The notes beneath the pieces are model-generated. The model was not told the origin of the DNA, ran no database searches, and saw nothing but the letters and a program-made list of their open reading frames with translations. Shown here one piece after another: positions 1,279-27,966 of a stretch of DNA of 27,966 nt. The position numbers and the translations under genes are program-made. Location of the stretch: positions 1-27,966 of the forward strand of contig MCFH01000139.1 in the NCBI GenBank assembly GCA_002104945.1. Reading direction: 5' to 3'. The DNA comes from Piromyces finnis finn (lineage: Eukaryota > Fungi > Neocallimastigomycota). Within the stretch, counting starts at the first letter, position 1; every line of letters starts with the position of its first letter.

Positions 1279-1301
1279 AGTGCCCCCACGAAGACTCTTG
1301 C

Positions 1302-6848: not shown

Positions 6849-6891
<43 letters not shown>

Positions 6892-7687: not shown

Positions 7688-7690
<3 letters not shown>

Positions 7691-7727
<37 letters not shown>

Positions 7728-7761
7728 TTATTTTTTTTATTATTTATTTAAAAAAAAAAAA

Positions 7762-7823
<62 letters not shown>
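7691..7823. repeat. Poly-T / poly-A tracts at the palindrome centre
   Basis: T run 7691-7725; A runs 7750-7762 and 7767-7823. Confidence 0.9.
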
Positions 7824-7826
<3 letters not shown>

Positions 7827-8491: not shown

Positions 8492-8536
<45 letters not shown>

Positions 8537-9166
8537 GATATATATATCTATTCTTTTTGTTGATTCTCTTCGAGTAATTTAATATTGCTAATTGAAATAT
8601 TCTTTTCTTACTGTTTTAAGTTAAACAAGTTATATCAGCATAGACAAGCCTTATTAACTAATCAACAGAGGTATACTAGGGGTGGTAGAAAGATCCTGAA
8701 GCACGTGACGGAACTTAGATCGTGTGAATAAGGTGACGGCAACATTTACCATTGGACGAAAGACTCTTAGTTAATAGTCTATTATATATAATTTGGTCGG
8801 TAACTTGAATCAGTAATAACAATATTAAATTAAAATTCTTGCTAGTAAATTGAAAACAAATAATAATTAACTATAAGAAAAACAGAAAACAAAAGTAATA
8901 ATTTCATCTTTTCTGACTGAACTAAGATAGTAAGGAGTGATACTAAAAATTTAAATAAATAATTGGTAGTACGTGCTGTGCTAGATTATTTGTATCTCAT
9001 TCTGTCAAGTGGTCGATAAAGGAATTTCGAGCTTGGTTACAACTAATAAGTGGTCGATAAAGGAATTTCGAACTTATAATTTTTTTTTAGACTATCAAAG
9101 GTATTTTTGAGTCTATACTGTGTCATCTTGTACTGCAATAAATTCGGTCAAGGAAAATACAAGAAA
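7824..9166 (+). other. Long non-coding 5' leader of the Ty3/gypsy element (5' LTR absent)
   Basis: GC-richer islands separated by poly-A/T tracts upstream of gag; no match to the L0 LTR; mirrored at about 6219-7590. Confidence 0.6.
9007..9071 (+). repeat. Exact 24-nt direct repeat AAGTGGTCGATAAAGGAATTTCGA (9007-9030, 9048-9071)
   Basis: Read directly; mirrored at 6314-6337 and 6355-6378. Confidence 0.9.
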
Positions 9167-10047
9167 ATGAGCAATTCTACTACAAGGATAGATTTCAAGG
9201 AGTTGAAGAAGGAACTCAAGGATATAGAAAAACTTTCCAAAGATAATTTGGACATAAGATCCTGGGCTTCTGAAATAAGTTTATGGATTGAACTTCAAGA
9301 TATCACTAGTGCCAAGAAAATTTACATGGCATGTGTGCTTACTTCTAAGGGTGAACCAAGAAAGGTAATCCAAGAGTTGGAAGATAAAGACAGTGATAGT
9401 GAAGATGAATATGAAAGTGAAAATGAAGAAGAGAATCAGAAAAATGAATCTAATGAAGAAGATTATCCCTCACTTGGGAAAATTATCAATGCCCTTGAAA
9501 CATTTTATGGGTTAAAAGAAGATCAAAGTATGTTATTACGGGAACTAAGAAGACTACGTATAAGAAGAAATGAATCAGTTAAAGATTTCAATAGAAGATA
9601 TAGATCTTTATATTTAAAGTTGGATAAGAAAAAGAAGAAGCAGATTAGTGTGTTAGATTATGCAGATTCTTTACAAAATAATAAAGAAGCATGGAGAAAA
9701 GTATCTTTAAAAGATGATATCACTCTAGAAAAGGCCTTTAAGATAGCTGAGAAGGTAGATAGGTTATCTACTAGAATAGATAATGATGGTAATCTACCAA
9801 CGACTACTGCAATAACCAAAAGTTATAATAATTTTCAACCATACAAGAGAAAAGTTTCTTTTACTGAAGCCAAAAAGCCTAATAAAGATGATGAAATGAA
9901 TAACCTAGTCAAGAAAATGAAAATTTAACTATTAAAGCTTGTTTCTTCTGTAGTGAACCTGGTCATTATCAACAAAATTGCCCAAAACTTCAAGCCATTA
10001 TTGAAGGAAACAAGAAGCGTTATTATGATAATCATTTAAATCATTAA
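9167..10047 (+). CDS. gag: Ty3/gypsy Gag (one homopolymer frameshift at about 9920)
   Basis: MSNSTTRIDFKELKK... ORF. The C-terminus with the CCHC knuckle is in frame on the mirror arm (ATGAAAAATTTA versus ATGAAAATTTA here). Stop TAA at 10045-10047. Confidence 0.88.
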
Positions 10048-10087
10048 GTGGGAGAAGAAGCACTCCCATCGTCAATAAAATAGCTTC
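10035..10087 (+). promoter_or_regulatory. -1 programmed ribosomal frameshift signal (slippery heptamer plus predicted H-type pseudoknot)
   Basis: T TTA AAT (10035-10041) in the gag frame, 6-nt spacer, stem 1 GTGGGAG (10048-54) / CTCCCAT (10063-69), stem 2 GAAGC (10057-61) / GCTTC (10083-87). The -1 frame is open into the pol ORF starting 10104. Mirrored at about 5298-5350. Confidence 0.75.
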
Positions 10088-13000
10088 AGCTCAGTATCAG
10101 TCAATGCCAAGTGAAGAAACAACAAGCCAGAGTGATTGGTCGAAAGAAGAATATGATGAAGAAATCGAAAGTGACTTTGAAGATACTGATATTAATGAAC
10201 AGTTCTTTGTATGTGCTAATAAAAGGAAGTTGGATAAAATAAGCAAAGAACAAGATGTAATAAAGAAAAACGACTTCACAAAAACTTGAAAAATGATCCT
10301 AGACCTATTCTTACACCTGCTCTTAGGAAACGTAAAGCACAAGAATTAGAAAATATACCAATAGATGTTTCTCCTAAGCAACTGCATCCTTCTATTATTG
10401 CTCAACCGAATATCAGAGAACAAAAACTAAAAGAAAGAAAACTTCGGGATAAAGAGCGTGCTAGTAGTAGTGAACAAAAGGAAGAAGAAAAGAATGAATT
10501 GGCAAGTTCTAATGAAGATCCTATTATTATCGACTATGATGAAGAAGAAATGTTTCTGCAATTACAGATAAGAAAGGTGCTAAGGTGGTAGAGAAAGATA
10601 ACACAAGTGAATCAACCAAATCTACTTCTAATTCAACTCTAAATAAATTAATGAAAGAGCAAAAGAAAGAAAAACCTGCAGAATCGAAGGTTAAGAAAAC
10701 TGCTAGAAATATTCAAATGATAGCAGATACGGAAGAATATAATGTAGTTAAAGATCTTAACGAAACAAAATGCAATATTACTTTTGGTCAATTACTTAAC
10801 TCGGCTCCAAAGTTACGAACGCAAGTGTCACAAGGTCTTAAACTGGAAAAGAACAACACAAAAATTGTGGGAGCTCTGGAGAATTTTAATGCTACTTCGG
10901 TATTAGTAAATAATGTAGATCATTCGTATGTAAGCAAAAGTAAAGAAGTATCAGAAGAAGATATCGCTATGGTAGATGCAACGGTTGATGGGGTACCAGG
11001 TAAATTATTAGTTGATTCCTGTAGCAACTTAAGTATTATAACAAAAAAATATTTAGATAAACTTCCCCATCAATATGAATCTATTGGATTGAGTTGTGGA
11101 AGAATACGTTTAGCTACTAAAAATGATGACTATTCGGAAGGCATAATTATTAGAGTACCGGTCCAGATAAATGATCTTACAATCACTGCTGATTTTAGAG
11201 TGGTGGATAAAGAAGACCCCTTTTATGATATGTTAATTAATTTGAAAACCCAAATGGATAACAACTTATTTATCCACCCACTTCGCTATAGTCTTTGCAG
11301 ATTTAATTCAAATGGATTTATTGAAGATATTGCTCCAATTAATAACAAATATGATGATGAAGAAAAGATTATGTGTATGATACGTAGAGTCGGTGATGAA
11401 GATTTAAAAGTGATTTGAAAAATATTGAAGGTTTACCACCTTCAGAATATATTCACAATAAAAATTTTACTGAGACTCTTAATGAAAAGTATCGAGAACA
11501 AATTGTTCGGATATTGGAAGAGAATATTGAAATTATTGCTACTTCTTCTGAAGAACTAACACCTTCGAATTTAACTCCCCATAAGATTAATTTAAAGCCA
11601 GGAGCAAAGCCAATTAAACAAAGATCATATAGGTTAGCCAAGTTCAAATCTGATATACTTAAGGAAGAATTGTCTAAATTGATTAATAAAAAGCTAATTG
11701 AGCCATCGTACTCGGAATGGTCTTCTCCGGTGGTTTTGGTCCCGAAGCATAATGGGAAATGGAGAATGTGCGTGGACTATCGAAGAGTTAATGATTTGTC
11801 TGAAAAGGATGCCTATTCAATTCCTTTTATAGATGAGATATTTGATAGTTTACATGGTGCAACTATATTCACTACTATGGACTTATATTCCGGCTATCAT
11901 CAAATCCTTATGGATGAAGAAAGCGTTGAATTGACAAGTTTTACAACTAAGTTTGGAAATTACCAATTCAAGGTTATGCCTTTTGGTCTCACTGGAGCAC
12001 CCGCTACATTTCAGAGGGAGATGAATCGGATTCTGTTTCCGTTAATTGGAAAGTGTGTTTATAACTTCATTGATGATATTCTGATCTATTCAAAGAGTAT
12101 TGAAGAACATATTGAACATATAAATCAAGTTTTAGCAATTTTCCGGGAAAACAAACTAAAAATCAATATTGAAAAATGTCATTTTATGCAAACTGAAGTT
12201 GACGTGTTAGGCCATCGTTTAACTACAGAAGGTCTTAAACCATTAGATAACAAAATCCAAGCTATAAAAAATTGGAAACCTCCTTCGAATATCCATGAAT
12301 TAAGATCATTCCTAGGTTCAATTGGATATTATAGAGATTTTATTCCTAATTATGCTAAACTTACTGCTCCCTTGTGTAAGCTGCTTAGAAAAGGTGTTCC
12401 TTTCAAATGGTGTAATGAACAACAAGAGAGTTTTATTATATTGAAAGAAAAGTTAATTAATGCGCCTATTCTGAAATTCCCTGATTTTGAGAAAGAATTT
12501 ATAATCCGAACAGATGCATCGTATGAAGGAATCGGAGGAGTATTATTACAAAAGGAAGGCACAGATATTGAACATCCAATTCATTATATTAGCCGAAGTC
12601 TGACGAAAGCAGAAAAAAATTATGGAATTACTGACTTGGAAGGGACTGCCTTATTTTACTGCATTACTAAATTAAAGCCTTATATAATGGGAAGTCCATT
12701 CAAGACTATCGTCTATACTGATCATAAACCATTAATTGGATTATTTAAAAATAAGGAGCCAAACAATGCAAGACAAACAAGATGGTGTTTAACAGCTAGT
12801 ATGCTAGGAGTTGATATTCGTTATGAACAAGGTAAAAAGAATGTTGTAGCAGATGCACTGTCTCGAATGAGAAATGACAAAGATAAGGAAGTGTTAGCTA
12901 CTAAAATTAATAAAGGTATAGAAGAAACCATGCTATCTAAGGTAATTAAAGAATTTGTTGAAGAAAAGTTCACCAAAATAGATGGGGTGGATTACTTTAT

Positions 13001-14087
13001 TGATGGAAGGAATTATCGAAAACTGATCACGGAAACCAATGAAAAGCTGAAATTGATTTTGGAAGCTCATAACATTGGACATGAAGGATATTATAAAACT
13101 TATCAACGTCTGAGAAAAAGCTATTATTGGAACGACATGGTTAATGATATTCGAAGAGTTGTAGCCAAATGTGAAAAATGCCAACTTAATCGCCCTCAAC
13201 CATATCCAGAACCTACGGAAAATCTTCCAACTGAGGTTGAAGCTCCTTTCACTCATCTGGGTTTAGATATCATTGGTCCATTGGTAAAAACTCGTAACAA
13301 TAACCAATATATTATAGTTGCAGTGGATCATTTCACAAAATGGGTCGAAGCAGAACCCACCGAAAATATCACTTCAAAGGATGTCATAAAATTTTTAATC
13401 AATGTTTTCTCTCGGCATGGAGTACCACAAGTCATTACAACCGATAACGGTGTCCAATTTACCTCAGATATGACCAAAGTTTTCCTGGACTTATATGATG
13501 TCTATGTCAAGTTTGTCTCAACTTATCATCCTGAAAGTAATGGTTTGACTGAAAATAGAAACAGAGAAATTGGAAAGCTTCTAAGACTGCTTGGAAAAGA
13601 AAACAAGGATTGGGATGAAATTTTGCCTTCTGCTCTTTGGGCGCTCAGAACTACTAAAAATACTGTCACAAACCATTCTAGTTTTGAATTGGTTTATGGA
13701 AGAGAAGATCAGCAACCCTTTGATATTGCCGCCAGACCTACTAAGGGTATTAATCAGTCTTCGGATGAAATCTTACTTGAGAAGTTTATTAATCATTACA
13801 GGTGGACGTTGGAAGCTTGTGAAAATATTAAAAATGCGAATAAATACTGGGCTACTAGAAGGGAAGAAAAACAAAGTATGACTAAGGGCAAAAATATCCA
13901 TATCGGTGATCTAGTATTAGTTAGAAATTTTAATCGAACGAAGTTAGAGCCTTATTTCGTTGGACCACTCAAAGTTGTCAAGAAACAATTCAATACTGTT
14001 ACTTTAGCTGATATATCCACTGGAATTCAGATGAACCGAAATGTTCATCTTAAGAATATTGTAAAGTTTAACTCTGCTTTTGCGTAA
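10035..14087 (+). CDS. pol: Ty3/gypsy Pol polyprotein: charged linker, aspartic protease, RT, RNase H, integrase (three 1-nt frameshifts at about 10282, 10549, 11404)
   Basis: Protease LLVDSCS. RT: WSSPVVLV, WRMCVDYR, MPFGL, FIDD. RNase H: TDAS, YTDHKPL. Integrase: H-X4-H...C-X2-C, DIIGP, TDNG, SNGLTE, GPY/F-like KLEPYFVGPL. Domain order PR-RT-RH-IN is diagnostic of Ty3/gypsy. No chromodomain. Confidence 0.96.
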
Positions 14088-14090
14088 GCA

Positions 14091-14110
14091 AGAGTCTTCG
14101 TGGGGGCACT
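14091..14110 (+). other. Weak polypurine-tract candidate (AGAGTCTTCGTGGGGGCACT)
   Basis: G5 run between the pol stop and the TG that starts the LTR; only partly purine. Confidence 0.4.
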
Positions 14111-14820
14111 TGTTAAGGAACCAACAAATAATGTTATTCTTGTCATAATTAATGATTATGACCTAATCCATTCATTATTGTTCCTAAATGTATGAAAACT
14201 TTACAATATTCTTATTTGTAAATTAATGTATACACTTAAATTATATTTAAAATTATTAATAATTATTTTTTATTGAACTTAAATTTTATTTTATTAAACT
14301 TAAAAATTAATTTAGTAATAATAATATATTGAAAATTATAGTTTATTGAACTTTTAGTTTAATTTATCAAGTTAATGAATTTTTATTAATTAAAATTATG
14401 AATAATATTTCTGTAAAATAGTAAAATTTTTTAGTTAAATATATTTAAAGTAAACTTTTAATGTATGTTAATCAATTTAATAATATGTATAAATATTTAT
14501 TATAATAGTAATGTAATTTTATTATTCATTTAAAAGTAATTTAAATACTAAAATTATGTAAATAATTAAAGACTAATTCTTTTAATTAACACTACTTAAT
14601 TTTTTACAAAAAGTATAAAAAGGTGTATATTATAAGAATTAGAGAATATACAGATATTTTTATTTTTATTTTTATTTTATTTTATAATTTTATATTAATA
14701 TCTTAATAAAACAATTTTATTAATAAAACAATTTTTCTTATTTCATTTTAATATTATTTTTGAGTATTAATAAATTTATTAATATTTTATAAATAAAAGT
14801 AAATTCCTCGAACCGTAACA
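14111..14820 (+). mobile_element. 3' LTR (L0), 710 bp
   Basis: Starts TGTTAAGG 24 nt after the pol stop; ends CCGTAACA (7/8 terminal inverted repeat). Confidence 0.75.
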
Positions 14821-14823
14821 TTT

Positions 14824-15624
14824 TGATAAATAATGAAATTAATAAATATAAAATTATTATTATACCTGATTTTTAAGTTAACCCTAAAAGTAACTTAAAA
14901 CAAGTTATAGTTTAATTAAGTACTTTACCAAAATTCTTAAATAAAATTAATCCTAAACACTGCATATATTTTGATTATTGAAAGAAAATAATAAACTTTA
15001 ATTAATCGAGATCAAAATATATAACTCTTGTTAAATTAATTGTTAAATTAAATATTTAATAACTTCGTTAGTAAATTACACTTTAAAAGTAAACAAATAT
15101 AATAATTCATGTTATAAAATAATATAATTAAACACCTTTATTAAAACATTAAAAATGATTATTACTTTAATTAATTGTAAAATAAACAACTTTTTATATT
15201 CTTTAACTTTTAATTATTTCTTTTATTGTTATTTCTAATTACTTTTATTGTAAATAGTTATTAATTTTATTGTTTTAATGTAAATAGTTTAAATCTAAAA
15301 GAAAATATAAATACATGTAAATATTCTTATTTTAATCATTATTATTATTATTAATAAAGAAATATTATATAGTTAGATTAATATTTTATAATTTTAATAA
15401 TCACTTTTATACTTAAATAAATAAAATTTTAAATATTTAAATATTAGAAAAACAAGTGTTTCTAATAAAACAATTTAGTGTTTTAACAAAACAATTTTAT
15501 TAATTTTATAAAAACGATTTTAAATCTTAATCAATATAACTTATATAGTTATAACAAAAGATATAATATAATAATCACTTTTTGAAGTAAAATTCAAAAT
15601 TAAGATTATTATCAAATTATATCA
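14824..15624 (+). mobile_element. V-family solo LTR V1 (801 bp, TGATA...TATCA), target site unoccupied
   Basis: TG...CA ends with a 5-bp inverted repeat; nearly identical to V3, which is followed by a PBS. Confidence 0.75.
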
Positions 15625-15627
15625 TTT

Positions 15628-15758
15628 TGATAAATAATTAAATTTATAAATTATGAATTTATAATAATAATAATAATAATAATATTAAAACACAGATAGT
15701 TAAAAATTAAAATAATTAACTTGTATAAAATTATTAAATTAAAAATTATAAATGTAAA

Positions 15759-15789
<31 letters not shown>

Positions 15790-16203
15790 TAAATTAAATA
15801 GTTTATATTTGTTTATAATTATACTTTAAAATAATAATTTTGTATAAATAGTGATAGGATTATTTTATTTTAAAAAGATGTTCCTAATAATCCAGTAAAA
15901 TTAGATAATAATATTAAATTTTATTAAAATAATAATTGTGATTATATTTACATACATTCAAGATGTATTAAACCATAACATATATATATTTAATAATACA
16001 AGAGTTATTAAATATTAAAACTTTATAATTAAATAAAATAATTTTATATTTTAAACTAACAAAGACTTGCAAATGAACAAGTATAAAAATCATTTATTCT
16101 ATTTTTATTTTCTTATTTATTTTTATTTATTAAATTTTAGATACAAATATTATCACTTTCTATATTCCTTTATAGAATTAAGATAATATTTTTCTTCGTA
16201 TCA
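15628..16203 (+). mobile_element. V-like solo LTR V2 (576 bp, TGATA...TATCA)
   Basis: Start TGATAAATAAT resembles V1; ends CGTATCA; lies between two T-run spacers; body diverged. Confidence 0.5.
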
Positions 16204-16207
16204 TTTT

Positions 16208-17657
16208 TTATAAATAATGAAATTAATAAATATAAAATTATTATTAAACCTGATTTTTATGTCAAAATCACAATTCATGAAATTTGACATTTCATGAAAT
16301 TTCATAATTTTGAATTATTAGTTAAATTAATTAAAATATTAATTTAATAATATTTTACTAATAATAGTTTATTTAATATAAATATTAATTGGAAAGCTAT
16401 TTATTATCCGGAGATAAATAGTGTAACAATTAATTAATATTAAACAAACCAATTAGTAAAATAAGATTCATTTAAATAATTATTAATATTATTTTTAACA
16501 ACTTTTTAATATCGATATTTAAAGAAAATTATATTATTATTATTATATTTTATTAATATTTATATTTATATTATTATACATGTATAACTTAAATTATATT
16601 ATTATTATTATACTTTATTAATATCAACATTATATTAAAAATGAAAGTATAAATAAGTTGAACAAAGAACAACTTTAAGAAGTTCTTTGTGAGATTATTA
16701 ATACTCATTTTTATATAGTAAATTCAATATTTAAAATTAATAATTATCATTTACTTATATTATAAAAATTAAATAAAATATTTCTTAAAAAACTATATTT
16801 ATTACTCTTTTATTTATAAAAATTTATTATTTACTATATAATTAAGCCTATCCTAACCTAGTAGACTTAATTATAGTTCTAAATCCACTCTAACTCTTGA
16901 CATTTTAAGTTAACCCTAAAAGTAACTTAAAACAAGTTATAGTTTAATTAAGTACTTTACCAAAATTCTTAAATAAAATTAATCCTAAACACTGCATATA
17001 TTTTGATTATTGAAAGAAAATAATAAACTTTAATTAATCGAGATCAAAATATATAACTTTTGTTAAATTAATTGTTAAATTAAATATTTAATAACTTCGT
17101 TAGTAAATTACACTTTAAAAGTAAACAAATATAATAATTCATGTTATAAAATAATATAATTAAACACCTTTATTAAAACATTAAAAATGATTATTACTTT
17201 AATTAATTGTAAAATAAACAACTTTTTATATTCTTTAACTTTTAATTATTTCTTTTATTGTTATTTCTAATTACTTTTATTGTAAATAGTTATTAATTTT
17301 ATTGTTTTAATGTAAATAGTTTAAATCTAAAAGAAAATATAAATACATGTAAATATTCTTATTTTAATCATTATTATTATTATTAATAAAGAAATATTAT
17401 ATAGTTAGATTAATATTTTATAATTTTAATAATCACTTTTATACTTAAATAAATAAAATTTTAAATATTTAAATATTAGAAAAACAAGTGTTTCTAATAA
17501 AACAATTTAGTGTTTTAACAAAACAATTTTATTAATTTTTATAAAAACAATTTTAAATTTTAATTCATATAACTTATATAGTTATAACAAAAGATATAAT
17601 ATAATAATCACTTTTTGAAGTAAAATTCAAAATTAAGATTATTATCAAATTATATCA
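16208..17657 (+). mobile_element. V-family 5' LTR V3, interrupted by LTR W
   Basis: 16208-16259 plus 16908-17657 reconstitutes V1 (about 802 bp); ends TATATCA and is followed by a PBS. Confidence 0.8.
16260..16902 (+). mobile_element. T-family solo LTR W (643 bp) with 5-bp TSD TTTTA
   Basis: TGTCAA...TTGACA inverted termini. TTTTA at 16255-59 and 16903-07; the empty site is visible in V1. Carries TCTTTGTGAGATTATT (16684-99), the T-family motif. Confidence 0.85.
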
Positions 17658-17658
17658 A

Positions 17659-17675
17659 TGGTCCTTCGAACCGGA
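17659..17675 (+). other. Primer-binding site, tRNA-Tyr type (TGGTCCTTCGAACCGGA)
   Basis: Begins 1 nt after the LTR CA. Complementary to the ...TCCGG(C/T)TCGAAGGA-CCA 3' end recalled for vertebrate-type tRNA-Tyr; the host tRNA is not in this window. Confidence 0.7.
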
Positions 17676-18194
17676 GAATCAAAATAAGGTAAATATATAA
17701 ATTTTCTTTATATAAAAATTTCATATAGAATAGTAAAATATTCTATGAAATTAATTAAATAATCAAGTTATAATAGTATAGAATAGATATTTAATAGAAT
17801 AGTTAGCTAGATATTCTCAATATTTTATCTATTTAGAAATTATAACTTATTAAATAATAAAATAATATTAAAATAAAATAAATAAATTATAATACTTAAT
17901 AGTATAGTATTAATATAGTAAATTGATATATAAACATTATATATTATATAAAATATATAGATATTTTAAATAAGAAAAGAATTTAAAAAAAAATAGTATA
18001 GAAGAATTATTAGATAACTAGATTGATAATATTATAAATAAGATAGTTGAAAGAATTAATTATAATAATAAAATAGGTATATATATATTAGGTATATATA
18101 CATAAAGATAAATATATAATAAAAATAAATCAAAATAATAATAAATAAAGATTTAAGTATATATATATAAAAAATATATATACACCAAACAAAC

Positions 18195-18237
<43 letters not shown>

Positions 18238-19050
18238 ATAAAACTTTATAAATAAAAATACTTGTAAAAATATACTAGGAGCGTATAGAGCTCATATACA
18301 GAGTTTCAGTGTATAATTAACTAGTTTCAGTTGGTTAGAAACTATAGCTGTTAATCACTGAAGTATTTGTAAAAGTAGGACGAGTGTGAATAGCACGCTT
18401 ACTTGGGGGAAGGGATTGTTAGTGTGATAAAGAGCACGCAATACAGGACTCTCAAGTTGAATACTTTTGTGAACTCTGGCGAATAAGGAACTTTAGTCAC
18501 CGAAGGCTAAAGGTTTGTCGTGAAGGTAAAGCGACATAAAAATATATAGTTTAAATTTATTTTGAGATCTAGTATATCACCTCTAGTTAGTAGCTTTTGC
18601 CAGTTAATTAAATTGTTGTAAGGCACTAAAAAGCGAAAAATAAATCCTGTAAATAAAGTTTTATATTTAATTATTTTTTTTAAAAAAAGAAAAAGAAATA
18701 CATAAATTATAATTATAAATTAATAATTATAATTTATAAATTAAAGATAAAAATTATTTAATTATAAAATATAATCATCGGTCAAGTAAAATTAAAAGTA
18801 TTGTTATAAATTTTAAATAATAAAAGCAATAATATTGAGTTGTCTTTTTAGTTAATTTTCAGCGAAAAATAACTTTTGTTTATCTTTTCGGTTAATTAAT
18901 TACTAAGATAATTAAAGTGTTTTATAGTAAGTTAGTAAGAGTGCAGTTTTATCACATATCGTGGGGGAATAGAGTGCTAACTAATAAGTAAATATTACAT
19001 CACTTAATATTTATGATGGTTAGTTAGTGGAGGTCGAAAGACACGGTGAC
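17676..19050 (+). mobile_element. Non-coding internal region of a V-family element (non-autonomous or deleted)
   Basis: Follows the PBS; no ORF in the track; poly-A tract near 18200-18230; GC-richer structured islands; ends at the V4 LTR head. Confidence 0.5.
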
Positions 19051-19110
19051 TGATAAAGAATGAAATTTATAAATAATGAATTAATAGAATAGCTGATTCT
19101 AAAATTATAT
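19051..19110 (+). mobile_element. Head of V-family LTR V4 (second subfamily; target site unoccupied; 3' end unresolved)
   Basis: TGATAAAGAATGAAATTTATAAATAATGAATTAATAGAATAGCTGATTCTAA aligns without gaps to the V1 head and is nearly identical to V5. Confidence 0.6.
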
Positions 19111-19472
19111 AAACTTAATATAAATTAAAATAATAGTAAATAATCAAATTAATATAAAATATAAATATTTAATTAAACTTTAAAAATGTAAAATATAAAC
19201 AACTTTTGTTTATAAACAAACTTAAATGTAATTTTTTATTATAAATAGAAATAGAAAATATTATTTTTAAGATTGTTACTAATTAGCCAGGAAAATTAGA
19301 ATATTTTAATAATAAAATAATAAATTTATATATTTTTTTATAATATATAGCTGATATAAATTAAGTAATAAATATAATACACTTTCTCATTGAAAGTTTA
19401 AAAACAATATTATTTATATAAAGAAAATTAATATTCTTAATTTTAGAAACGCTTTATTAATTAGGTTTTTAG

Positions 19473-19487
19473 AAAAAAAAATTAAAA
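19473..19487 (-). terminator. Pol III oligo-T terminator downstream of tRNA-Thr
   Basis: On the minus strand, T4 then T9 within 20 nt of the tRNA-Thr 3' end. Confidence 0.6.
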
Positions 19488-19491
19488 TTAA

Positions 19492-19563
19492 TGCCTATTG
19501 ACGGAATCGAACCACCGACCTTCGCTTTACAAGAGCGACGCTCTACCACTAAGCCAAACAGGC
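19492..19563 (-). tRNA. tRNA-Thr (TGT)
   Basis: GCCTGTT/AATAGGC acceptor stem, A box TGGCTTAGTGG, anticodon arm TCGCT-CTTGTAA-AGCGA, GGTTCGATTCC B box; 72 nt, no intron. Confidence 0.93.
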
Positions 19564-19570
19564 ATTAAAT

Positions 19571-19641
19571 TGCGTTAACCGGGAATCGAACCCGGGCCAT
19601 TTGCTTGGAAGGCAAATATTCTACCTCTATACTATTAACGC
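19571..19641 (-). tRNA. tRNA-Gly (TCC)
   Basis: GCGTTAA/TTAACGC acceptor stem, anticodon arm TTTGC-CTTCCAA-GCAAA, T arm CCGGG-TTCGATT-CCCGG; 71 nt. Confidence 0.95.
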
Positions 19642-20737
19642 CTTACTTTCATTTATTTGATACGCTACTCACATAAAAACGTAATAAAAACTAGCCGAAT
19701 AAACACGACTTAACCCATAACGACTTATAATAAAAATAAAAGATAATAACCCTTAAAAATGAATAAATAATAATTTTATGGAAATATAACCCTTTCTTTT
19801 AAATAAATAATATTCTCTTTATTAAATAATAAATTATGAATAAAAACGACCTAATAGTGATAATAATAAAATAAATTATTAAATAAAATAAAACGACTCA
19901 ATCCAAAAATGTATTAAAATAATAAAATAATAATAAGTAAATAAAAATGAATAAATAAACTAAAAAATAAAATGATATACATTAAATTATTAATTCTAGT
20001 GTTTTATCCAAGTGTTCTTTAGAAATTCTTTCAAACTTATATATATAAATTAACAAATAAATAACTGAGTAATTATTACTAAAAGTGATTAATTTAAAGC
20101 CTGGAAATAGAACAATAATAACAATTCCAAAGATAAAATACAGAACTCTTTTATGTTTCTGTATAAAATGAGTGTTTATAATAATTGATACTTTTAATAT
20201 TTTAATTTCATTTTAATTTTATTTTAATATTATTTTAATTTTAAATTTTAATTATTTTATTCAAGGTATTATACATTTAATGATAGTCAATGATAATTTA
20301 TAATAATTTTTCTAAATTTAAACATTTTGAAGTAATAAGAAAATCAAATAAGTAATATTCTATAATATTTTATAATACTAAGACATAATTTTAATTTATT
20401 CTTTTAATTTTAATAAATAATAACAATAGTAATAATAACATTTAATAGTTAAAAATAATAATACATGTAATAAATGAAAATGTATAAAAGGAAGATAAAA
20501 TTCTTCTTTATAAAGGGCGGACAATAAATAGACAATAAATAAAATTATAAATATAATAAAGAGATAATTTAAACATAATAAAAAGAGTTTATTTTCGAGT
20601 TTTTGAGTGATTTATTTGTTAATTATAAAACATATTTTATTTTATTTTAAATTTATTGTTTCATCATTATAATATAGAATTTATTATTTATTAAAAACAT
20701 TATATTATTCACAAATATATCGGTCAACGCATCATAT

Positions 20738-20789
20738 TTATAAAGAATGAAAATTATAAATAATGAATTAATAGAATAGCTGATTTTAA
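20738..20789 (+). mobile_element. Head of V-family LTR V5, truncated at the T-family insertion site
   Basis: Nearly identical to 19051-19102; ends CTGAT-TTTAA and is followed by the TG of LTR1. Confidence 0.65.
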
Positions 20790-21787
20790 TGTGAAGATAT
20801 TAACTGGATTTAAAACAAATTCAGATAATATCTATAATTAATTAAACATAATAATTAGAATTAAATAATCCCAATAATAATTTTAAAATACCTTTAAAAG
20901 TCACCTTTTAAATTTTGGTTCAGTGAAAGGGTTATGATTTCAAAAAATTTAATATCAATACACTATAACCCTTAGCCAAAAATAAACAAATACGAAACTA
21001 CGCATAACTCGTCAAAAACGAGCGTTACGGCTGTAAGTGCTACGGCTGTGAAACCAGGTTTATTAGAAAGCTTAAGGGAAAAGCTATATTTTGGTACAAT
21101 CGCGGTCCTTCTAACTGGTCATTAAGGAAGATATGGTCATTTAAAGATTTTAATAAGTAAATTAAAATTAATATGATATCAAGTATGGATCATAGACATT
21201 TCTTATGACTTGACGAAAAATTAAAAAGATATCAATACAGAAATTTTAATTATATTAATTTAATTAATGATAGTGACTGTTACTAAAAATAGAACTAAAC
21301 CATTTAGGTGTAACAGTTAACATTTATAAATTAAATAATTTTAATTATTATAAATAGGTTAATGGATCAAGTGTTTAAATGATTAATCATATGTTTATTT
21401 TATTTTATGTCATGACAAAACAAACAAACAAACAAACAAACAATCTTATTATATTATTAACATATTACATGTAATACTTTATTTTTATCAATTTAATAAT
21501 CTGAACAAAGAATATAAAATAGAATGAATTGAATTCGATTTTAATTCTTTGTAAAGATTATAGTTATAATCTTAATTATATAGTTATTAAATATATTATC
21601 ATTTATATTATTATTAATAAATAAATAAAATTTTATAAAAAAAATTATTCTAAAGAATAAATATTAATTTTTCATTTGGAAGTTTAAAGGGTTATTTTAT
21701 ATTTAAATTTAATTTCTTAAAAACATATTTACTATATAATTGATAACATTCTGACCTGGCCGCATAACCAAATCCAAAAACTTAACA
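20790..21787 (+). mobile_element. T-family solo LTR1 (998 bp), flanked by TTTAA/TTTAA
   Basis: TGTGAAG...CTTAACA; identical 5-bp flanks at 20785-89 and 21788-92; independent inverted homolog at 25339-26467 with the same termini; motif GTAAAGATTAT at 21551. Confidence 0.85.
21417..21442 (+). repeat. (AAAC)n microsatellite inside LTR1; inverted counterpart at about 25702-25723
   Basis: Read directly. Confidence 0.85.
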
Positions 21788-21792
21788 TTTAA

Positions 21793-23012
21793 TGTCAAGA
21801 ATAGAAGACGATTAAAAAATAAACTAAATGTTCAAATAAACAACTTAAAAATCAAATTTATATTTCAAAAAGTATAAAACACTTTTAAAAATAATTAAAA
21901 AGATCACTTGGAAAAATTTAATATTGAAAAGGGTTAAGGATCACAAAAATTTAATTTTCAATAAATTAACCCTTGAGAAGAAAATGCACTATACGAAACT
22001 AGTGATAACTTCCGAATCTCGTGTCCTATTTTCCTTTTCTAGAGACTTCAAATTAATTTTATTAGGAAGTACTAGTCGAGATCTATATTCTCACAAATTT
22101 TCAGCTAATTTAGACCACTAGTTCTTGAGATATAGCTATTTAAAGAATTAATTAGTTCCAATAAATATATAATATATATTAAAATGATTAATATTAATTT
22201 ATATAATTAAAGTCATTATTCAAGTCATCCAACTTTCTATAAATAATTCAATTTAAAAATTCTCCATTATTATTAAATAAGGTTAGATAATAAATATTCT
22301 TGATTATAAACCTAATCAATTATAAAAATTAATTAATAATTTTTCAAATAATTTTGATTAATAACCTCAATCATAATCAAACCAAAAAAGCCTTTGGATC
22401 AAAAATCATTAGTTATAATTATTAATTAATTAATCATGAGAATATATAATTAGTATCAGTAATTGTTATTCTCAATTTATAATATTAAATATTTACAATT
22501 TAAAATGGTTAAAACAATACTTTTATTTTAAAAGTAATTTAAAAGATTAATCTTAAGATCTATCATATGAATTCATATTATTAATATCAATATCAATTAT
22601 TAATATTTTAATTTAAAATTATTTTATTTTTATCTTTATTATTAATATCAATATTAATATCAATGTAATTTTATTATATGTAAGAAAAAAAATATTTAAA
22701 CAAAGAATTGAAATCAATCTTGAAATTCTTTGTAAGATTATTAATTATTAATTATTAACTATAATATAACTTAATAAATATTATCTTAATAAATAAATAA
22801 TTAATAAACAAATTTCATAATTAAATTATATTAAAATTTTTTATTTTAAATATAAAAACCTATTTAATTTTAAATTAGTATTAATTAAATTCTTTAATAA
22901 GTTTTGAAGAAAAGATTTAATAATAAATAAGTTTAATATTTTATTAGTAAATTAAGTTATATTATATAAAATATTCTGACCAAGTTACATATCAATCCTA
23001 GCTCACTCAACA
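21793..23012 (+). mobile_element. T-family solo LTR2 (1220 bp), flanked by TTTAA/TTTAA
   Basis: TGTCAAG...CTCAACA; shares GATCACTTG, the AAGGGTTAA dyad, TCTTTGTAAGATTATT (22727-42) and ATTCTGACC with LTR1/LTR3. Confidence 0.75.
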
Positions 23013-23017
23013 TTTAA

Positions 23018-24051
23018 TGTCACGAATACTAGTGGAATCTGCAATTTCAAGATCACTTGAAATTGTGAATTACTTATAAAATTTCAAAATCAATAATATT
23101 TTATTTTCAAATAAATTATAAAATTATATTAAGAAATATTTAAAAAAATTTAGAAAAGGTTAAGATATGACCTTAACCCTTAATATTTTAATAATAAGTA
23201 ACTTTAACCCTTATCGTCAAAATTAAATAAGGAAAAACATGTGTATCTCCTTAACGAATGGCGATTTTGGATAATTGTGTTTTGGGAGATTGTGGGTTCG
23301 TTAGAAATCCACGCTTGAGATAAACATCATATCTTAAAATCAGGTCGATATCTCTGCTGGTTCACGAGATATTCCAATTTAAAGATATTTTGTTAGTAAT
23401 GATTAATTGTTTATTCAGAGAATGATCACCCCTGATGTATTGAACATAAATCATTCACCCAAAAGGATATAAATTATTGTTTTAATTAAATTAAGATTAT
23501 TTTCCGGAATTAATTAACTTTATTTTATAATAATTATTTCAATAACATAACTTATAATCTTTGAATTAAAAGATTATAAATTATTAATATTATATTCAAT
23601 GAATTATATTATAATTAAGAAATAATTAATATTATAAATATATAAACAATAGTTATTTTTAACAATTAGTAGTAAGTCTTAAGTTTAGCCTTAGTATTAT
23701 AAAATATATTATGAATATAATCATGTACTAAAAAGTTATTTTAGTATTAAATGTAAAATTACAAATAGTATAAATAGTTTAGAATAGTTTTATGAATTAA
23801 ATCTTTGTAAAGATTATTACCTTATTAATACTTACAAGTAATACTATTAAATAATCTTATTATTATATATACTCTTCAAATAAAATAAAAAGAAATTATT
23901 TTAACTATAATACATAATTTAATTATTATTATTCATTTAAAAAACAATTAAGATTATTTTAATAAAACATTTTTTCTAACCTAGTTATCTTTAATCTTTT
24001 ATTTAATTTAATATTTTAATATTAAATTATAAGTTTAGTAAAACTTTTACA
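23018..24051 (+). mobile_element. T-family 5' LTR3 (1034 bp)
   Basis: TGTCACG...TTTTACA; inverted homolog at 26473-27508 with the same termini; followed by a self-complementary PBS and gag. Confidence 0.85.
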
Positions 24052-24062
24052 ATAATCTTTAC
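24052..24062 (+). other. Self-priming PBS (ATAATCTTTAC)
   Basis: Exact reverse complement of GTAAAGATTAT at 23807-23817 inside LTR3; directly abuts the LTR CA. Confidence 0.7.
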
Positions 24063-24116
24063 CGCGTTTTTACCATAACTACCTTAGGAAAAAAACTTAA
24101 TTTAAAAAATTCCAAA

Positions 24117-24930
24117 ATGACTCAACCAACACCTAAACCAGTTCAACAATTTCTAAAGCCTCAAGATTTAGAAGAATTTAAGAAAAATCTTTGTGGTGAA
24201 CTGGATAAGTACATTACTCAACAATTGGACAAAAATACCACCTCCTTATTAGAACGTATGGATGCTATGTTAAAGGAACTCAAGAGCCGTGCTACTTATA
24301 CTGAAACTGAAGAATCTTCTACTAGTTATGATGAAGATCATGATGTTATAATGCGCAATAGAACCTATCCTATAAAACAAGTACCCGATCCAGGATTCTT
24401 TACTGGTGATACTACTCAGACTGAATTATTCTGCGAACTCTGCCAAACTACCTTTAAAACTCCACCTAACAACCAGCTCTCTGAAGAAGTAAAAATTAAC
24501 TTTGTTGTTGTTAGATTACGTGATTCTGCCAGAACTTGGTACCATATTAAATACAAAGATGGAATTGCTCCTATGATCATGAGCGAACTATTAAGTGAGT
24601 TAAACCAAGCCTTTTCAAATGTTACCAGTACTAAATTAGCCATGATTCAATTAATAGAATTAAGACAAGCTTATGGAAAAGTGAATGATTATATTAACAA
24701 ATTTAGAGATTTAAGTCGTTGCTTAGAAATAGATGACACTAGTCTTTCACTATTATTTTTAAATGGATTACATCCAAATATAAGAATGAAATTAAGAAAA
24801 CTGATATTTTACCAAACACTTTAAGTGAAATGGTTACAAAGTGCATAATTTTTGAAAATTCTCTTGCAACCAATAACAAATTAAATATCAATATCAATAA
24901 TAATAATATAATAATAATAATAATAAAAAC
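24117..24930 (+). pseudogene. gag: Ty3/gypsy (retrotransposon gag / PEG10-like) Gag, frameshifted near 24778
   Basis: PDPGFFTG...KINFVVVRLRDSARTWY...LRQ...VNDYINKFRDL...LFLNGL. Adding one A at about 24778 continues the frame as PKYKNEIKK...LSEMVTKCIIFE into an Asn-rich tract. Confidence 0.85.
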
Positions 24931-25236
24931 CAACATTACAACAAGAGAAAAAATAGAAAATTCAATAAGAATAAAACCAATATCAAAATTCAAACAACAA
25001 TAATAATTATGTCAATAAAGTTCAAAAAATTAACCCAAAAAACTAGGAAATGAACTCTCAAGAGAGTCTAAGAGGGTTCATAATACAAAAATAATACATT
25101 ACAACTTTCCTACATATGACTCTAAAATAAAATATAAAATTGCCTACTACATTTTTTAATTTAAAATTTTATATTCCAATTAAATTAAACAAATTTTACG
25201 ATTTTAAAAGATTCAATTAATAAAAATCAATACAAT

Positions 25237-25281
25237 TTAATTTTAGATAGTGGCTCATATTGCAATTTTATTCAATCAACT
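25237..25281 (+). pseudogene. Degenerate aspartic protease remnant (LILDSGSYCNFI)
   Basis: Manual translation; D-S-G at 25246-25254; surrounded by stops; truncated by the LTR at 25339. Confidence 0.65.
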
Positions 25282-25338
25282 TAGTCAATAAAATTAAAAC
25301 TAAAACCACACAAATTATTACATTCAATCGAAATAAAT

Positions 25339-26467
25339 TGTTAAGTTTTTGGGTTTGGTTATGCGGCCAGGTCAGAATGTTATTAATTATATAGTAAAAA
25401 TGTTTTTAAGAAATTAAATTTAATTATAAAATAACACCTTAAACTCCCAAATGAAAATTGAAAAAATTTATATTTACTTTAAAATAACTTTTTATAAATT
25501 TTTTATTTATTTAATAATAATAATATAAATGATATTATAAGTAACTATATAATTAGATTATAACTATAATCTTACAAAGAATTAAAATCGAATTCAATTC
25601 ATTCTCTTTTATATTCTTTGTTCAGATTATTAAATTGATATTAATAAGAATAAAGTATTACATGTAATATATTAGTAATATAATTAAATAAGTAATAAGA
25701 TTGTTTGTTTGTTTGTTTGTTTGTCATGACATAAAATAAAATAAACATATGATTAATCATTTAAACAGTTGATCCTAATTAGTAATTATAAAAACTATTC
25801 AATTAATAATTCATCATTATTAATTGATATTACCATAACATATTTGTTATAATTAAATAATTATTATTTTCAAAATTATTTCTAATAAAACTTGCCGTTA
25901 ACCTATTTATAATAATTAAGATTATTTAATTTATAGGTGTTAACTGTTACACCTAAATGGGTCTAGTTCTATTTTTTAGTAACAATCGTTATCATTAATT
26001 AAATTAATATAACTAAAATTTCTATTGATATATTTTTAATTTCATCAAGTCATAAGAAATATTTATGATCCATACTTGATATCATATTGATTTTAATTTA
26101 CCTAATAAAATCTTTAAATGATCATAACTTCCTTAAATGATCAGTTAGAAGGACCGCGATTGTACCAAATTGTAGCTTTCTTCCTAAGCTTTCCAATAAA
26201 CCTAGTTTTCATCACCGTAGTACTTATAGCCGTAGCGATCGTTTTTGGCGATTACACCTTATTTCGTACTTGCTTATTTTTGGTTAAGGGTTATAGTGTA
26301 TTGATATTAAATTTTTGAAATCATAAACCCTTTCACTGAATCAAAATTTAAAAGGTGACTTTTAAAAGTGTTTTAAAATATTATTGAAATTATTTAATTA
26401 TAATTATTAGTTTAATTAATTATAGATATTATCTGAATTTGTTTTAAATCCAGTTAATATCTCCACA
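25339..26467 (-). mobile_element. T-family LTR1-like copy (1129 bp), inverted
   Basis: Reverse-complement homology to 20790-21787 with about 120 bp extra at about 25784-25900; flanks differ (no TSD). Confidence 0.85.
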
Positions 26468-26472
26468 ATTAT

Positions 26473-27508
26473 TGTAAAAGTTTTACTAAAACTTATAATT
26501 TAATATTAAAATATAAATTAAATAAAAGGTTAAAAGATAACTAGGTTAGAAAAAAAAAAATGTTTTATTAAAATAATCTTAATTGATTTATAATGAATAA
26601 TTATATTATGTATTATAGTTAAAATAATTCCTTTTTATTTATTTAAAGAATATATATAATAATAAGATTATTTAATAGTAATACTTATTAAGTATTAATA
26701 AGATAATAATCTTTACAAAGATTTAATTCATAAAACTATTCTAAACTATTTATACTATTTGTAATTTTACATTTAATAATAAAATAACTTTTCAATACAT
26801 GATTATATTCATAATATATTTTATAATACTTAAACTAAACTTAAGACTTATTCCTAATTATTAAAAAATAAACTATTGTTTATAATATTCATAATATTAA
26901 TTATTTCTTAATTATAATATAATTCATTGAATATAATATTAATAATTATAATCCTCTAGTTCAAAGATTATAAATTATGTTATTGAAATAATATTATAAA
27001 ATAAAGTTAATTTAGTTCCGGAAAATAATTTTAATTTAATTAAACAATAATTTTTTTATACTTTGAGTGAATGATTTATGTTTGATATATCAGGGGTGAT
27101 CATTCTCTGAATAAACAATTAATCATTGCTAACAAAAATATCTTTAAATTGGAATATCTCGTGAACCAGCAGAGATATTGACCTGATTTTAAGATATGTT
27201 GTTTGTCTCGAGCGTGGCTTTCTAACGAACGTAATTATAACCAAAATATTATTATTCAAAATCGTCATTCGTTGAGGAGATACGCGTGTTTTTTCTTATT
27301 CCATTTTAACGATAAGGGTTAAAGTTATTTATTATAAAAATTATTAAGGGTTAAGGTCATATTTTAACCTTTTTCTAAATTTTTAAATATTTCTTAATAA
27401 AATTTTATAATTTATTTGAAATAAAATATTTGTTGATTTTGAATTTTCATAAGTGATTTCACAATTCCAAGTGATCTTGAAATTGTAATTTCACTAGTAT
27501 TCGTGACA
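26473..27508 (-). mobile_element. T-family LTR3-like copy (1036 bp), inverted; possibly a 3' LTR
   Basis: Reverse-complement homology to 23018-24051; on the minus strand it is preceded by purine-rich GGCGGAGCGA (27509-18, PPT candidate). Confidence 0.85.
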
Positions 27509-27966
27509 TCGCTCCGCCAAAAAAATCGAATACCAGGCGATTGAAATAATATAAAAATAAAGTTGTATAATAAAAGTATAATTGAAATAATTGAAGTAGT
27601 ATATATTAAATATAAACCAATATATAGTTGTATGTGTAACATGAAATAAAATGGTAACTAAATAAAGAATATATTTAATATAATATGTTGAATATATTGC
27701 AATATATGAAATAAAATTAAAAAACATTTTCTTGTGTAACATTCAGTCAAATTCATAAAATTTTTGAAAGAAATGTTGAAATTTAAATTGATCATTGAGT
27801 TGAAAAAATTGAAATTCGTACGAAAAATTAAAAATTGAATAAGAAATATTATTCCTAGGATATTGAAACACTTTTTATTTTTGAAAAATGTTAACATTTG
27901 CTAAAATAATTGAAATTTCAAAAATTGATCAAATAAACTTTAATTAATATGATTTTGAAAAAAAAA

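Follow-up and report, generated by a model that had tools for sequence, protein, structure and literature searches.

Stacked LTRs sharing one 5-bp target sequence in Piromyces finnis: probable tRNA-gene-anchored integration of Tf1-type retrotransposons

Insertion beside tRNA genes is a textbook route of transposons to safe sites in compact genomes, and its independent origins inform our picture of how integrases are tethered. Ty3 of Saccharomyces cerevisiae, which is tRNA-primed, relies on TFIIIB to insert in either orientation where Pol III starts transcription, 16-19 bp away from the tRNA. For this Ty3/gypsy element, targeting of Pol III genes at the nucleotide level is described in two reports (PMC5911963, PMC8632968). 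Tj1 of Schizosaccharomyces japonicus, a self-priming relative of Tf1 among the Ty3/gypsy elements, generates a 5-bp target site duplication (TSD) and inserts upstream of tRNA genes in one orientation, a fixed orientation described as unique in its paper (PMC4600332). In Schizosaccharomyces pombe, Tf1/Tf2 reach single-nucleotide specificity through Sap1, a host DNA-binding protein that also binds LTRs (PMC7175516). The DGLT-A element of Dictyostelium lands about 15 bp, and the non-LTR element TRE5 about 50 bp, from tRNA genes (PMC5006619). Double insertion into one target leaves the target duplication in the junction between the copies, and unequal exchange may then expand the pair (McGurk and Barbash 2018, PMC5932611; R1 in rDNA). 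Our literature search returned no work on transposon targeting in the Neocallimastigomycota, the anaerobic gut fungi.

The window, i.e. the whole stretch of 27,966 nt analysed here, is contig MCFH01000139.1 of P. finnis, a fungus with a very AT-rich genome. It contains three LTRs in tandem, here U1, U2 and U3, each of which starts with TG, ends with CA and is preceded by the same 5-mer. On the plus strand, the tRNA-proximal TTTAA (20785-20789) is followed by U1 (20790-21787, 998 bp), a second TTTAA (21788-21792), U2 (21793-23012, 1220 bp), a third TTTAA (23013-23017) and U3 (23018-24051, 1034 bp), and the CA/TTTAA/TG junctions lie at 21786-94 and 23011-19 (the 5-mers themselves carry no strand). 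Boundaries, lengths and junctions of the original prediction were reproduced throughout. Resemblance between the three LTRs is patchy (about 66-73% across 200-260 nt) and the array is therefore not a tandem duplication, again as predicted. The accompanying claim that all three are solo LTRs holds for U1 and U2, as judged from sequence and TSD analysis. It fails for U3, because a primer-binding site comes after it, and then a gag ORF; LTR pairs elsewhere and the tree identify U3 as the 5' LTR of a truncated element of an older U3 subfamily.

We assign U1, U2 and U3, as LTRs, to three related Ty3/gypsy families, probably of the self-priming Tf1 type. U3-type LTR pairs bound 7.7-kb gag-pol elements at L034 (LTRs 99.7% alike, TSD TTAAT) and L035 (LTRs 100% alike, TSD GATTT), for which profile searches revealed gag, PR-RT-RNaseH-IN and a Tf2-1 SH3 domain. 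In the ORFs of L035 the domains follow in the order PR-RT-RNaseH-IN and the SH3_Tf2-1 match has an E value of 6e-15; in the same ORFs, two of which share the split IN region, neither a chromodomain nor the rve core was matched at E <= 0.01. The primer-binding site of the window's U3 element (24051-24062, plus strand) is an exact 12-nt complement of LTR position 790-801, a putative self-primer at the start of R (23807-23818, plus strand), and this pairing within its own LTR, which L035 shows as well, predicts self-priming of the Tf1 type. A related self-primer-like motif is located 240-284 nt from the 3' end in U1 and U2 (240 nt in U1). The gag ORF (24117-24824, plus strand, 235 aa; Pfam Retrotrans_gag, E 4e-9) has about 30 genomic copies with 92-93% amino acid identity. 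Behind it, a degenerate remainder of the interior (24825-25338, plus strand), aligning to L035 589-2902 at 91%, ends abruptly at 25338. U1 copies elsewhere in the genome are 93-97% identical and, going by coordinates, C35 would have a U1-type LTR that precedes a gag (54% group) by about 150 nt. At least 28 further U2 copies have 92-98% identity, and a full-length U2 element was not found among about 30 U2 copies. Isolated U2 copies carry clean 5-bp TSDs (ACATT at L012, CCATT at L015, TTATC at L017 and ATTTT at L010). Inspection of the U LTRs for Pol III A and B boxes gave an AGTGG-like word near +14 and no B box, and taking this for a promoter would be over-reading.

The idea of successive insertions at one TSD, put forward from the window alone, is supported by the genome as the sole reading that fits the data. 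U1, U2 and U3 are each found alone and, as pairs, in all six possible orders; the pair spacers (TAACT, AATAA, AAATT, TGAAC, AATTA, AGACT and more) differ between loci and are usually identical to the outer flanks. We ran the suggested junction search genome-wide, in scans for an LTR 3' end and an LTR 5' start separated by 0 to 30 nt, the gaps being counted from coordinates. Exactly 5 nt separated the two LTRs in 24 and 27 per 100 junction matches listed in the two scans (51/200 among the matches listed), at about 2.5 for each of the other 30 gap lengths. The 5-bp spacing is thus about ten times commoner than any other, an excess far beyond chance. Stacks of this kind, up to 4-5 LTRs high, are common in the genome, and a triple, earlier rated as striking, is nothing unusual in it. 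The window's U2 groups in the trees with a copy from a different stack, not with its counterpart in the L003/L004 stack, which shares the TTTAA site; a common origin of these two stacks was discarded, the trees indicating independent events.

The U1-U2-U3 block as a whole occurs once more, on C181, with 99.7-100% identity and unchanged flanks, and this occurrence is a duplicate of the window's small contig (C45). We looked for the 3.26-kb block with new outer TSDs, as expected of one composite LTR, and encountered only these two copies. An origin by duplication or recombination, be it a composite LTR, unequal exchange or an IN-independent tandem made by single-strand annealing, we regard as extremely unlikely for the block. 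Homologous exchange would require more similarity than U1, U2 and U3 have, and the occurrence of all orders, with locus-specific spacers equal to the outer TSD, speaks against copying of a fixed unit. Tf1 does make tandems by an IN-independent route, but tandems of the annealing type share one LTR and have no TSD between copies (PMC11042837). Same-family arrays of identical copies do exist: on C135, a tRNA-Ala gene is followed after 65 nt by five U3 LTRs with AATAA spacers, at mutual distances of 0-0.001 and with a period of 1037. This array is best read as a double insertion followed by unequal exchange.

Re-use of one target would be explained by a fixed distance to tRNA genes. A genome scan for U-type LTRs near tRNA-Cys yielded 25 matches with gaps of 64-68 nt throughout, although 40-70 nt were allowed, and the corresponding tRNA-Gly scan yielded 9 matches, all with gaps of 65-67 nt within the allowed 45-75; the control gave 0 in both cases. 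The LTR thus starts 64-68 nt upstream of the tRNA gene in 34/34 pattern matches. It points away from the tRNA gene, the reversed orientation being represented by 1 match, i.e. a ratio of 25:1. The sequence between tRNA gene and LTR takes at least eight unrelated forms. Eight of the 20 young U3-type elements sampled have a confirmed tRNA gene on the opposite strand, 65-67 nt from the LTR start. The tRNA-like sequences near L034, L039 and L041 were set aside, being confirmed neither by ARAGORN nor by Rfam. Near U-type LTRs we found genes for tRNA-Cys, -Gly, -Ala and -Thr.

We propose, with a probability of about 0.68, that integration anchored at tRNA genes causes the ordered LTR stacks on a single 5-mer. 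The tRNA gene would position the integration machinery of the U-family elements, most likely by a tether, either to the Pol III complex or to a nucleosome of fixed position beside it. A 5-bp staggered cut would then be set about 62-66 nt upstream of the tRNA 5' end, with the element directed away from the tRNA gene. The tRNA-proximal TSD copy would keep this distance after insertion, and the next element would therefore cut the same five bases and shift the earlier copy outward. LTR-LTR recombination would then turn most copies into solo LTRs. The result would be LTRs arranged head to tail, separated throughout by one 5-mer, with the youngest nearest to the tRNA gene.

As an alternative, an integrase or a host protein bound to the termini of U-type LTRs could direct new elements to the 5 bp flanking a resident U LTR, irrespective of tRNA genes. 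This reading, at first preferred, could account for the dominance of the exact 5-bp spacing over 4, 6 or 7 bp and for some stack loci having no tRNA gene within 1.5 kb. It lost ground to the tRNA distances. In most young elements the 5' flank is not a U LTR and lies at the fixed tRNA distance. Homing to LTR ends would also be at odds with the one-sided polarity of the stacks, to which C46 was only apparently a counter-example (see below). Isolated insertion sites have no preference for CA/TG flanks, and a CA-N5-TG target consensus was dropped after seven clean isolated sites proved to lack such flanks. We consider this explanation very unlikely.

The proposed anchor of the window's stack is a tRNA-Gly(TCC) gene (19571-19641, minus strand; ARAGORN, Rfam 67 bits), of the tRNA species that gave the 9 tRNA-Gly matches above. 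Its 5' end faces the stack, and it is accompanied by a tRNA-Thr(TGT) gene (19491-19564, minus strand; ARAGORN, Rfam tRNA 68.5 bits); Rfam detected no Pol III RNAs other than tRNA in window positions 14000-27966. Between anchor and stack lie two LTRs of a second class, recognised by their TGATA...TATCA-like ends. The first, Z (19658-20733, plus strand; TGATA at the start, ATCA at the end), is 16 nt away from the 5' end of tRNA-Gly and recurs with identical ends at L008, L015, L017 and L030. Of the second, a Y'-type LTR of repeat family D4/D6, only the first 48 nt (20737-20784, plus strand) precede the stack that interrupts it; an uninterrupted Y' is present in the window from 19051 onward, and L010 has a U2 copy in the same LTR type, 2 nt off. 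According to our proposal, the five bases hit were +49 to +53 in the Y'-type LTR, then itself about 16 nt from tRNA-Gly, and the U3 element would have arrived first, followed by U2 and U1. By its position, U1 is the youngest of the three. We read Z as a later insertion that displaced the stack from tRNA-Gly by 1.08 kb and may thereby have closed it. The reconstructed distance before arrival of Z, about 67-69 nt, is at the edge of the observed range.

The right part of the window appears to hold an opposing stack. Adjacent to the truncated U3 element, U1' (25339-26467, minus strand; ends read from the sequence), a diverged relative of U1 with 85-89% identity and a long terminal branch of 0.064 in the tree, is separated by a 5-bp spacer (26468-26472; ATAAT on the minus strand) from U3' (26473-27508, minus strand; 98% to the L035 LTR). 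U3' is the 3' LTR of a young minus-strand element of the U3 type that exits the window, leaving the 3' end of its interior at 27509-27966. L035 6777-8267 aligns to window 27966-26473 at 98.5%, and the interior side of U3' is the reverse complement of the sequence before the 3' LTR in L034, L035 and L032. By coordinates, the 5' LTR of this element is that of L045, 67 nt from another tRNA-Gly gene on C181. The young U3' element is thus tRNA-proximal, and the old U1' would, from the arrangement of the sequences, be the distal, older member.

In another explanation, the signal resides in the second-class LTRs. A factor that binds their first 50 nt, or else their 5' end, would set the cut at +47 to +52, and the tRNA distance would follow only from these LTRs sitting 14-17 nt from tRNA genes, as they do in the genome scans. 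Every mapped site does coincide with position +47 to +52 in an LTR of the second class. Both L045 and L050 have the site 51 nt from the LTR start, with tRNA distances that differ by 1. Moreover, five of the 20 young elements (L042, L049, L051, L053 and L055) have this 50-nt LTR head and no tRNA gene in the roughly 200 nt inspected; our model then needs a still later insertion in between. However, the first 50 nt of second-class LTRs comprise at least eight dissimilar sequence types, and an intact Y remote from tRNA genes (window 14824-15624) is unoccupied. In flanks of the Y type (n=4), where Y is displaced by 3 nt with respect to the tRNA gene, the site inside Y moves by 3 nt as well, so that the total remains 66-67 nt. 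We hold a signal borne by the second-class LTR to be unlikely, if less so than homing to LTR ends. For anchoring at the tRNA gene itself, it has to be considered that the tRNA-LTR distance varies by +/-2 nt between genes and re-use inside one stack is mostly exact, so that the model needs a gene-specific precision.

The stacks were further expected to be an ordered record of invasions, and in outline they are, with younger copies tending toward the tRNA side. On C13, a tRNA-Cys gene is followed after 65 nt by U3a, U3b, U3c and U1, every spacer being TTTTA; U3a and U3b are identical and U3c differs by 0.009. Terminal branch lengths on C165 are 0.001 for a young element, 0.0145 for a U3 solo LTR and 0.013 for U1, and on C46 they are 0.010 for U2 and 0.026 for U3. 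The latter locus was withdrawn as a counter-example to polarity, since the U3 LTR there is one of the old subfamily and fits the order. In a tally of neighbouring pairs by terminal branch, 11 fit the expected age order, 5 are contrary and 3 tie, a measure that across families is noisy and varies with the number of copies sampled; as a dating method we did not treat it as decisive.

The U families share with Tj1 the relationship to Tf1, self-priming, the 5-bp TSD and a fixed orientation upstream of tRNA genes. [quoted passage not shown] Stacks have not been reported for Tj1 (PMC4600332). With Tf1/Tf2 they have in common self-priming, the order PR-RT-RNaseH-IN and the Tf2-1 SH3 domain; Tf1, however, targets Pol II promoters instead of tRNA genes (PMC7175516) and has a chromodomain, a domain not detected here in the L035 ORFs. 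Nucleotide-level targeting by Ty3 likewise permits repeated use of one site, and in position it is the second LTR class (Z, Y; 14-17 nt) that resembles Ty3, not the U families. DGLT-A, TRE5-A and relatives show the same convergence on tRNA genes, with family-specific fixed distances and shared tRNA genes, in other element lineages and another host kingdom. Known double-insertion tandems, too, keep the target duplication in the junctions between copies, but consist of copies of one family, while up to four families share one 5-mer here, and the cause would be a ruler set by the tRNA gene.

Targeting of tRNA genes as such is known from Ty3, Tj1 and DGLT-A; what looks new is that the elements sit at 66 nt in divergent orientation and form ordered stacks. 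This new distance, together with an orientation fixed as divergent, is found in a lineage that is self-priming and resembles Tf1. Whether a group of the Tf1/sushi lineage in anaerobic gut fungi independently evolved Pol III-anchored integration with a new geometry (~66 nt upstream, strictly divergent), beside a Ty3-like group at ~16 nt, is in our view an evenly balanced matter. If it did, each tRNA gene would be a landing pad with two slots, the chronology of invasions could be read from the LTR stacks, and the tether would be an undescribed contact, e.g. with the first nucleosome upstream or with TFIIIB at its upstream edge. The stacks would provide a built-in relative clock of family activity. 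They account for much of the repeat structure near tRNA genes in this assembly, which is relevant to annotation and to judging assembly redundancy.

A motif common to the hot spot in Y and the ends of U LTRs was sought, with nothing convincing emerging. Comparison of occupied and empty Y copies after the 12-mer CGAACCGTAACA was uninformative. This 12-mer is followed, after 1-5 variable nt, by at least six different LTR heads and thus resembles the terminus of a further LTR in a stack, not element interior.

The original prediction read this region as TTTAA/LTR1/TTTAA/LTR2/TTTAA/LTR3, a layout that is exact in the window sequence: TTTAA at 20785-89, U1 at 20790-21787 (998 bp), TTTAA at 21788-92, U2 at 21793-23012 (1220 bp), TTTAA at 23013-17 and U3 at 23018-24051 (1034 bp), each LTR starting with TG and ending with CA. 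Simple tandem duplication had been dismissed, in line with the patchy likeness of the units (66-73% over ~200-260 nt, in a contig with a GC content of 12-20% outside genes). A primer binding site (PBS, 24051-24062) lies directly 3' of U3, starting at the last LTR base, and is followed by a gag ORF (24117-24824, Pfam Retrotrans_gag) with about 30 near-identical gag copies in the genome. The proposed solo-LTR status thus holds for U1 and U2 but not for U3, which belongs, as 5' LTR, to an element cut short at 25338. The window is one entire contig (C45, 27,966 bp) of the assembly searched, which comprises 56,455,805 bp in 232 contigs; the published Piromyces finnis assembly has 56.46 Mb in 232 contigs (PMC5622200).

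Two complete elements, L034 (592-8266, LTRs 99.7% alike, TSD TTAAT) and L035 (589-8267, identical LTRs, TSD GATTT), encode gag, PR-RT-RNaseH-IN(H2C2) and a Tf2-1-type SH3 domain, in this order. In U3, LTR position 790-801 is an exact 12-nt complement of 24051-24062, a predicted Tf1-type self-priming arrangement as described for Tf1/Tf2 (PMC7175516). A closely related primer-like motif is present in U1 and U2, 240-284 nt from their 3' ends; since their 5' ends are related too and isolated copies show clean 5-bp TSDs, we regard U1, U2 and U3 as LTRs of related families. In L035, whose LTRs are 100% identical, the integrase region (2705-6311) is split over two ORFs (2705-5419 and 5493-6311), and the rve core domain gave no score at E <= 0.01 there; possible explanations are a frameshift, readthrough, an intron and a genuine defect.

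A composite LTR moving as one unit was not found. Elsewhere the full block occurs only on contig C181, with 99.7-100% identity and identical flanks, and is therefore a duplicate of the small contig studied here. All pair orders exist in the genome (U1-U2, U2-U3, U2-U1, U3-U2, U3-U1 and U1-U3), nearly always head to tail and ~5 bp apart, and LTRs of families U4, U5 and U7 also join such stacks. The spacer inside a stack usually equals the outer flank and varies from stack to stack (e.g. TAACT, AATAA, AAATT, TGAAC, AATTA, AGACT/TTAGA); AAATT occurs three times in one four-LTR stack. In trees, the window U2 clusters with the U2 of another stack (L005), apart from that of the other TTTAA stack (L003/L004), so the stacks formed independently. 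Two genome-wide scans for an LTR end, N{0,30} and an LTR start, with 100 matches listed in each, gave a gap of exactly 5 in 24 and 27 cases, any other gap accounting for ~2.5; the exact 5-bp spacing is thus dominant genome-wide among the matches listed. Pair orders, locus-specific spacers and tree placement together bear out sequential insertion into one TSD. The integrase-independent tandems described for Tf1 have one LTR in common and no TSD, and for this reason do not explain the stack.

What fixes the re-used five bases is apparently the distance to a tRNA gene. Homing to resident LTR ends became a minor rival when the flanks of elements showed tRNA distances. In L035 and another young element, L031, the 5' LTR starts 66 nt from an opposite-strand tRNA-Cys, with differing intervening sequences. 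We took 300 nt upstream of 20 further young U3-type elements; the 5' LTR start was locatable in 15, and in six of these a confirmed tRNA (Cys, Gly, Ala, Thr) lies at a distance of 65-67 nt, which makes eight elements with L031 and L035. Three more (L034, L039, L041) adjoin unconfirmed tRNA-like sequence. There, A-box-like and B-box-like words lie ~65-72 nt from the LTR starts (L034:~430-520), and neither ARAGORN nor Rfam called a tRNA; candidate identities are intron-containing tRNAs, pseudogenes and SINE-like Pol III units. When a tRNA-Cys 5' end, N{40,70} and a U-type LTR start were sought in this order, 25 matches resulted (control 0), all with gaps of 64-68, 12 of them copies of one 5.57-kb tandem unit. 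This unit, in which a U-type LTR starts 64-66 nt upstream of a tRNA-Cys gene, forms arrays of period ~5.57 kb on contigs C47, C74 and C79 (e.g. C74:931-17722; C79:834271-845498). For tRNA-Gly, with gaps of 45-75 allowed, all nine matches fell at 65-67 (control 0). With the LTR reversed, one match was obtained; in about 25 of 26 cases the element is therefore directed away from the tRNA gene. At least eight unrelated sequences were seen in the interval between tRNA and LTR. In two cases a stack lies directly next to its tRNA: on C13, tRNA-Cys is followed after 65 nt by U3a, U3b, U3c and U1, with TTTTA throughout, and on C135, tRNA-Ala is followed after 65 nt by five U3 LTRs with AATAA spacers. 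We propose, with a probability of roughly 0.68, that the stack results from a preference of a Tf1-like lineage for integrating at tRNA-anchored sites in a specific orientation, presumably through a tether to the tRNA-gene machinery.

At 14-17 nt from the tRNA, most of the intervening sequences open with TGATA-like heads, which belong to LTRs of another class (Y, Y', Z; ~0.8-1.1 kb, TGATA...TATCA or an ...ATCA end). They occupy the same position relative to the tRNA as Ty3 in yeast, which sits ~15-19 bp from tRNA genes, and they stack too, with spacers of 3-6 nt. Window units of this kind lie at 14824-15624, 15628-16196, 16208-17657, 19051-19400 and 19658-20733; the element at 8.5-14.1 kb may be their autonomous partner. 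Given where these heads begin, the U site corresponds to +47 to +52 of a second-class LTR, and the insertion signal could be borne by that LTR instead of the tRNA. Five young elements indeed have the LTR head and no tRNA in the upstream sequence examined. In four Y-type flanks, however, where Y is displaced by 3 nt against tRNA-Cys, the cut inside Y moves by 3 nt as well (GATTT vs TTTTA), keeping the tRNA distance at 66-67 in this small sample, and the LTR heads are diverse. Matched shift and diversity favour the tRNA as the ruler; the small sample and the five elements make the LTR-borne signal the main rival, though an unlikely one. At +48 of one Y LTR lies a reversed 644-bp U7-type LTR (16259-16902, TSD TTTTA); in stacks, unlike U1-U3, U7 is found in either orientation.

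With the tRNA as anchor, the window can be read from minus-strand tRNA-Thr and tRNA-Gly (19491-19641), followed after 16 nt by Z (19658-20733) and, 3 nt further, by the first 48 nt of Y' (20737-20784) next to the TTTAA stack. Before Z, the stack would have lain ~67-69 nt from tRNA-Gly, U3 arriving first, then U2, then U1; Z would then have taken the 16-nt slot and shifted the whole stack outward by 1.08 kb. Today the -66 position falls inside Z and has no insertion; in the Z-type LTR of L009 its equivalent is occupied by U2. To the right, on the minus strand, lie U1' (25339-26467) and, 5 bp away, U3' (26473-27508), the 3' LTR of a young element whose 5' LTR, by C181 coordinates, is that of L045, at a distance of 67 nt from another tRNA-Thr/tRNA-Gly pair. 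Two opposing stacks, seeded by tRNA pairs ~14.5 kb apart, meet at 25338/25339. The ATAAT spacer here (26468-26472) recurs at C165:67862-69059, C16:41199 and C176:199076, and is identical to the 5 nt that directly follow the U3 5' LTR; it may be linked to the PBS. On C165, the last LTR is followed on its right by sequence matching the Y''-type LTR of window 15628-15700; around the +48 site this LTR has an (AAT)n run, and the ATAAT of C165 is thus a piece of it. The contig studied here is only 28 kb long, and at least window 19285-25556 duplicates part of C181. In positions 1-15403, a Ty3/gypsy element (PR, RT-RNaseH-IN ORF 11415-14087) and following LTRs are duplicated almost perfectly in inverted orientation (arms 1-7542 and 7862-15403, 98-100% identity) around an A/T-run centre; this could be a palindromic artefact of long-read assembly or a genuine head-to-head pair.

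The ordered record of invasions that had been suggested holds in outline, with a tendency for younger copies to be tRNA-proximal. On C13, with one family and comparable branches, a shows no difference from b, and c, further out, is at a distance of 0.009. Across families the tally of neighbouring pairs (11 fit, 5 do not, 3 ties) is suggestive only. C165 has a young element (0.001), then a U3 solo LTR (0.0145) and U1 (0.013), all with ATAAT spacers; on C46, U2 (0.010) is proximal to an old U3 (0.026); the L020 and L022 stacks are monotonic. The five U3-type LTRs at C135:110800-115500 (L062) are virtually identical (distance 0-0.001, period 1037, AATAA spacer). This array probably arose from a double insertion enlarged by unequal exchange, as modelled in Drosophila (PMC5932611), and is a possible seed of a satellite.

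Targeting of tRNA genes is in itself known. The closest system is Tj1 of S. japonicus, which is Tf1-related, self-priming, tRNA-gene targeting and fixed in orientation, but inserts 5-11 bp from the tRNA and in the gene's own orientation (PMC4600332); the U families differ in both distance and direction. DGLT-A inserts ~15 bp and TRE5 ~50 bp from tRNA genes (PMC5006619), and Tf1 reaches single-nucleotide targeting via Sap1, but at Pol II promoters (PMC7175516). The literature searched yielded no work on how retrotransposons are targeted in Neocallimastigomycota. LTRs of U1, U2, U3, Y and Z all contain a telomere-like word, TAACCCTTA / TTAACCCTAA (window 20900-20990, 21925-21975, 23150-23215, 14875-14960 and 19700-19800), and in Y it begins immediately beside the insertion site.
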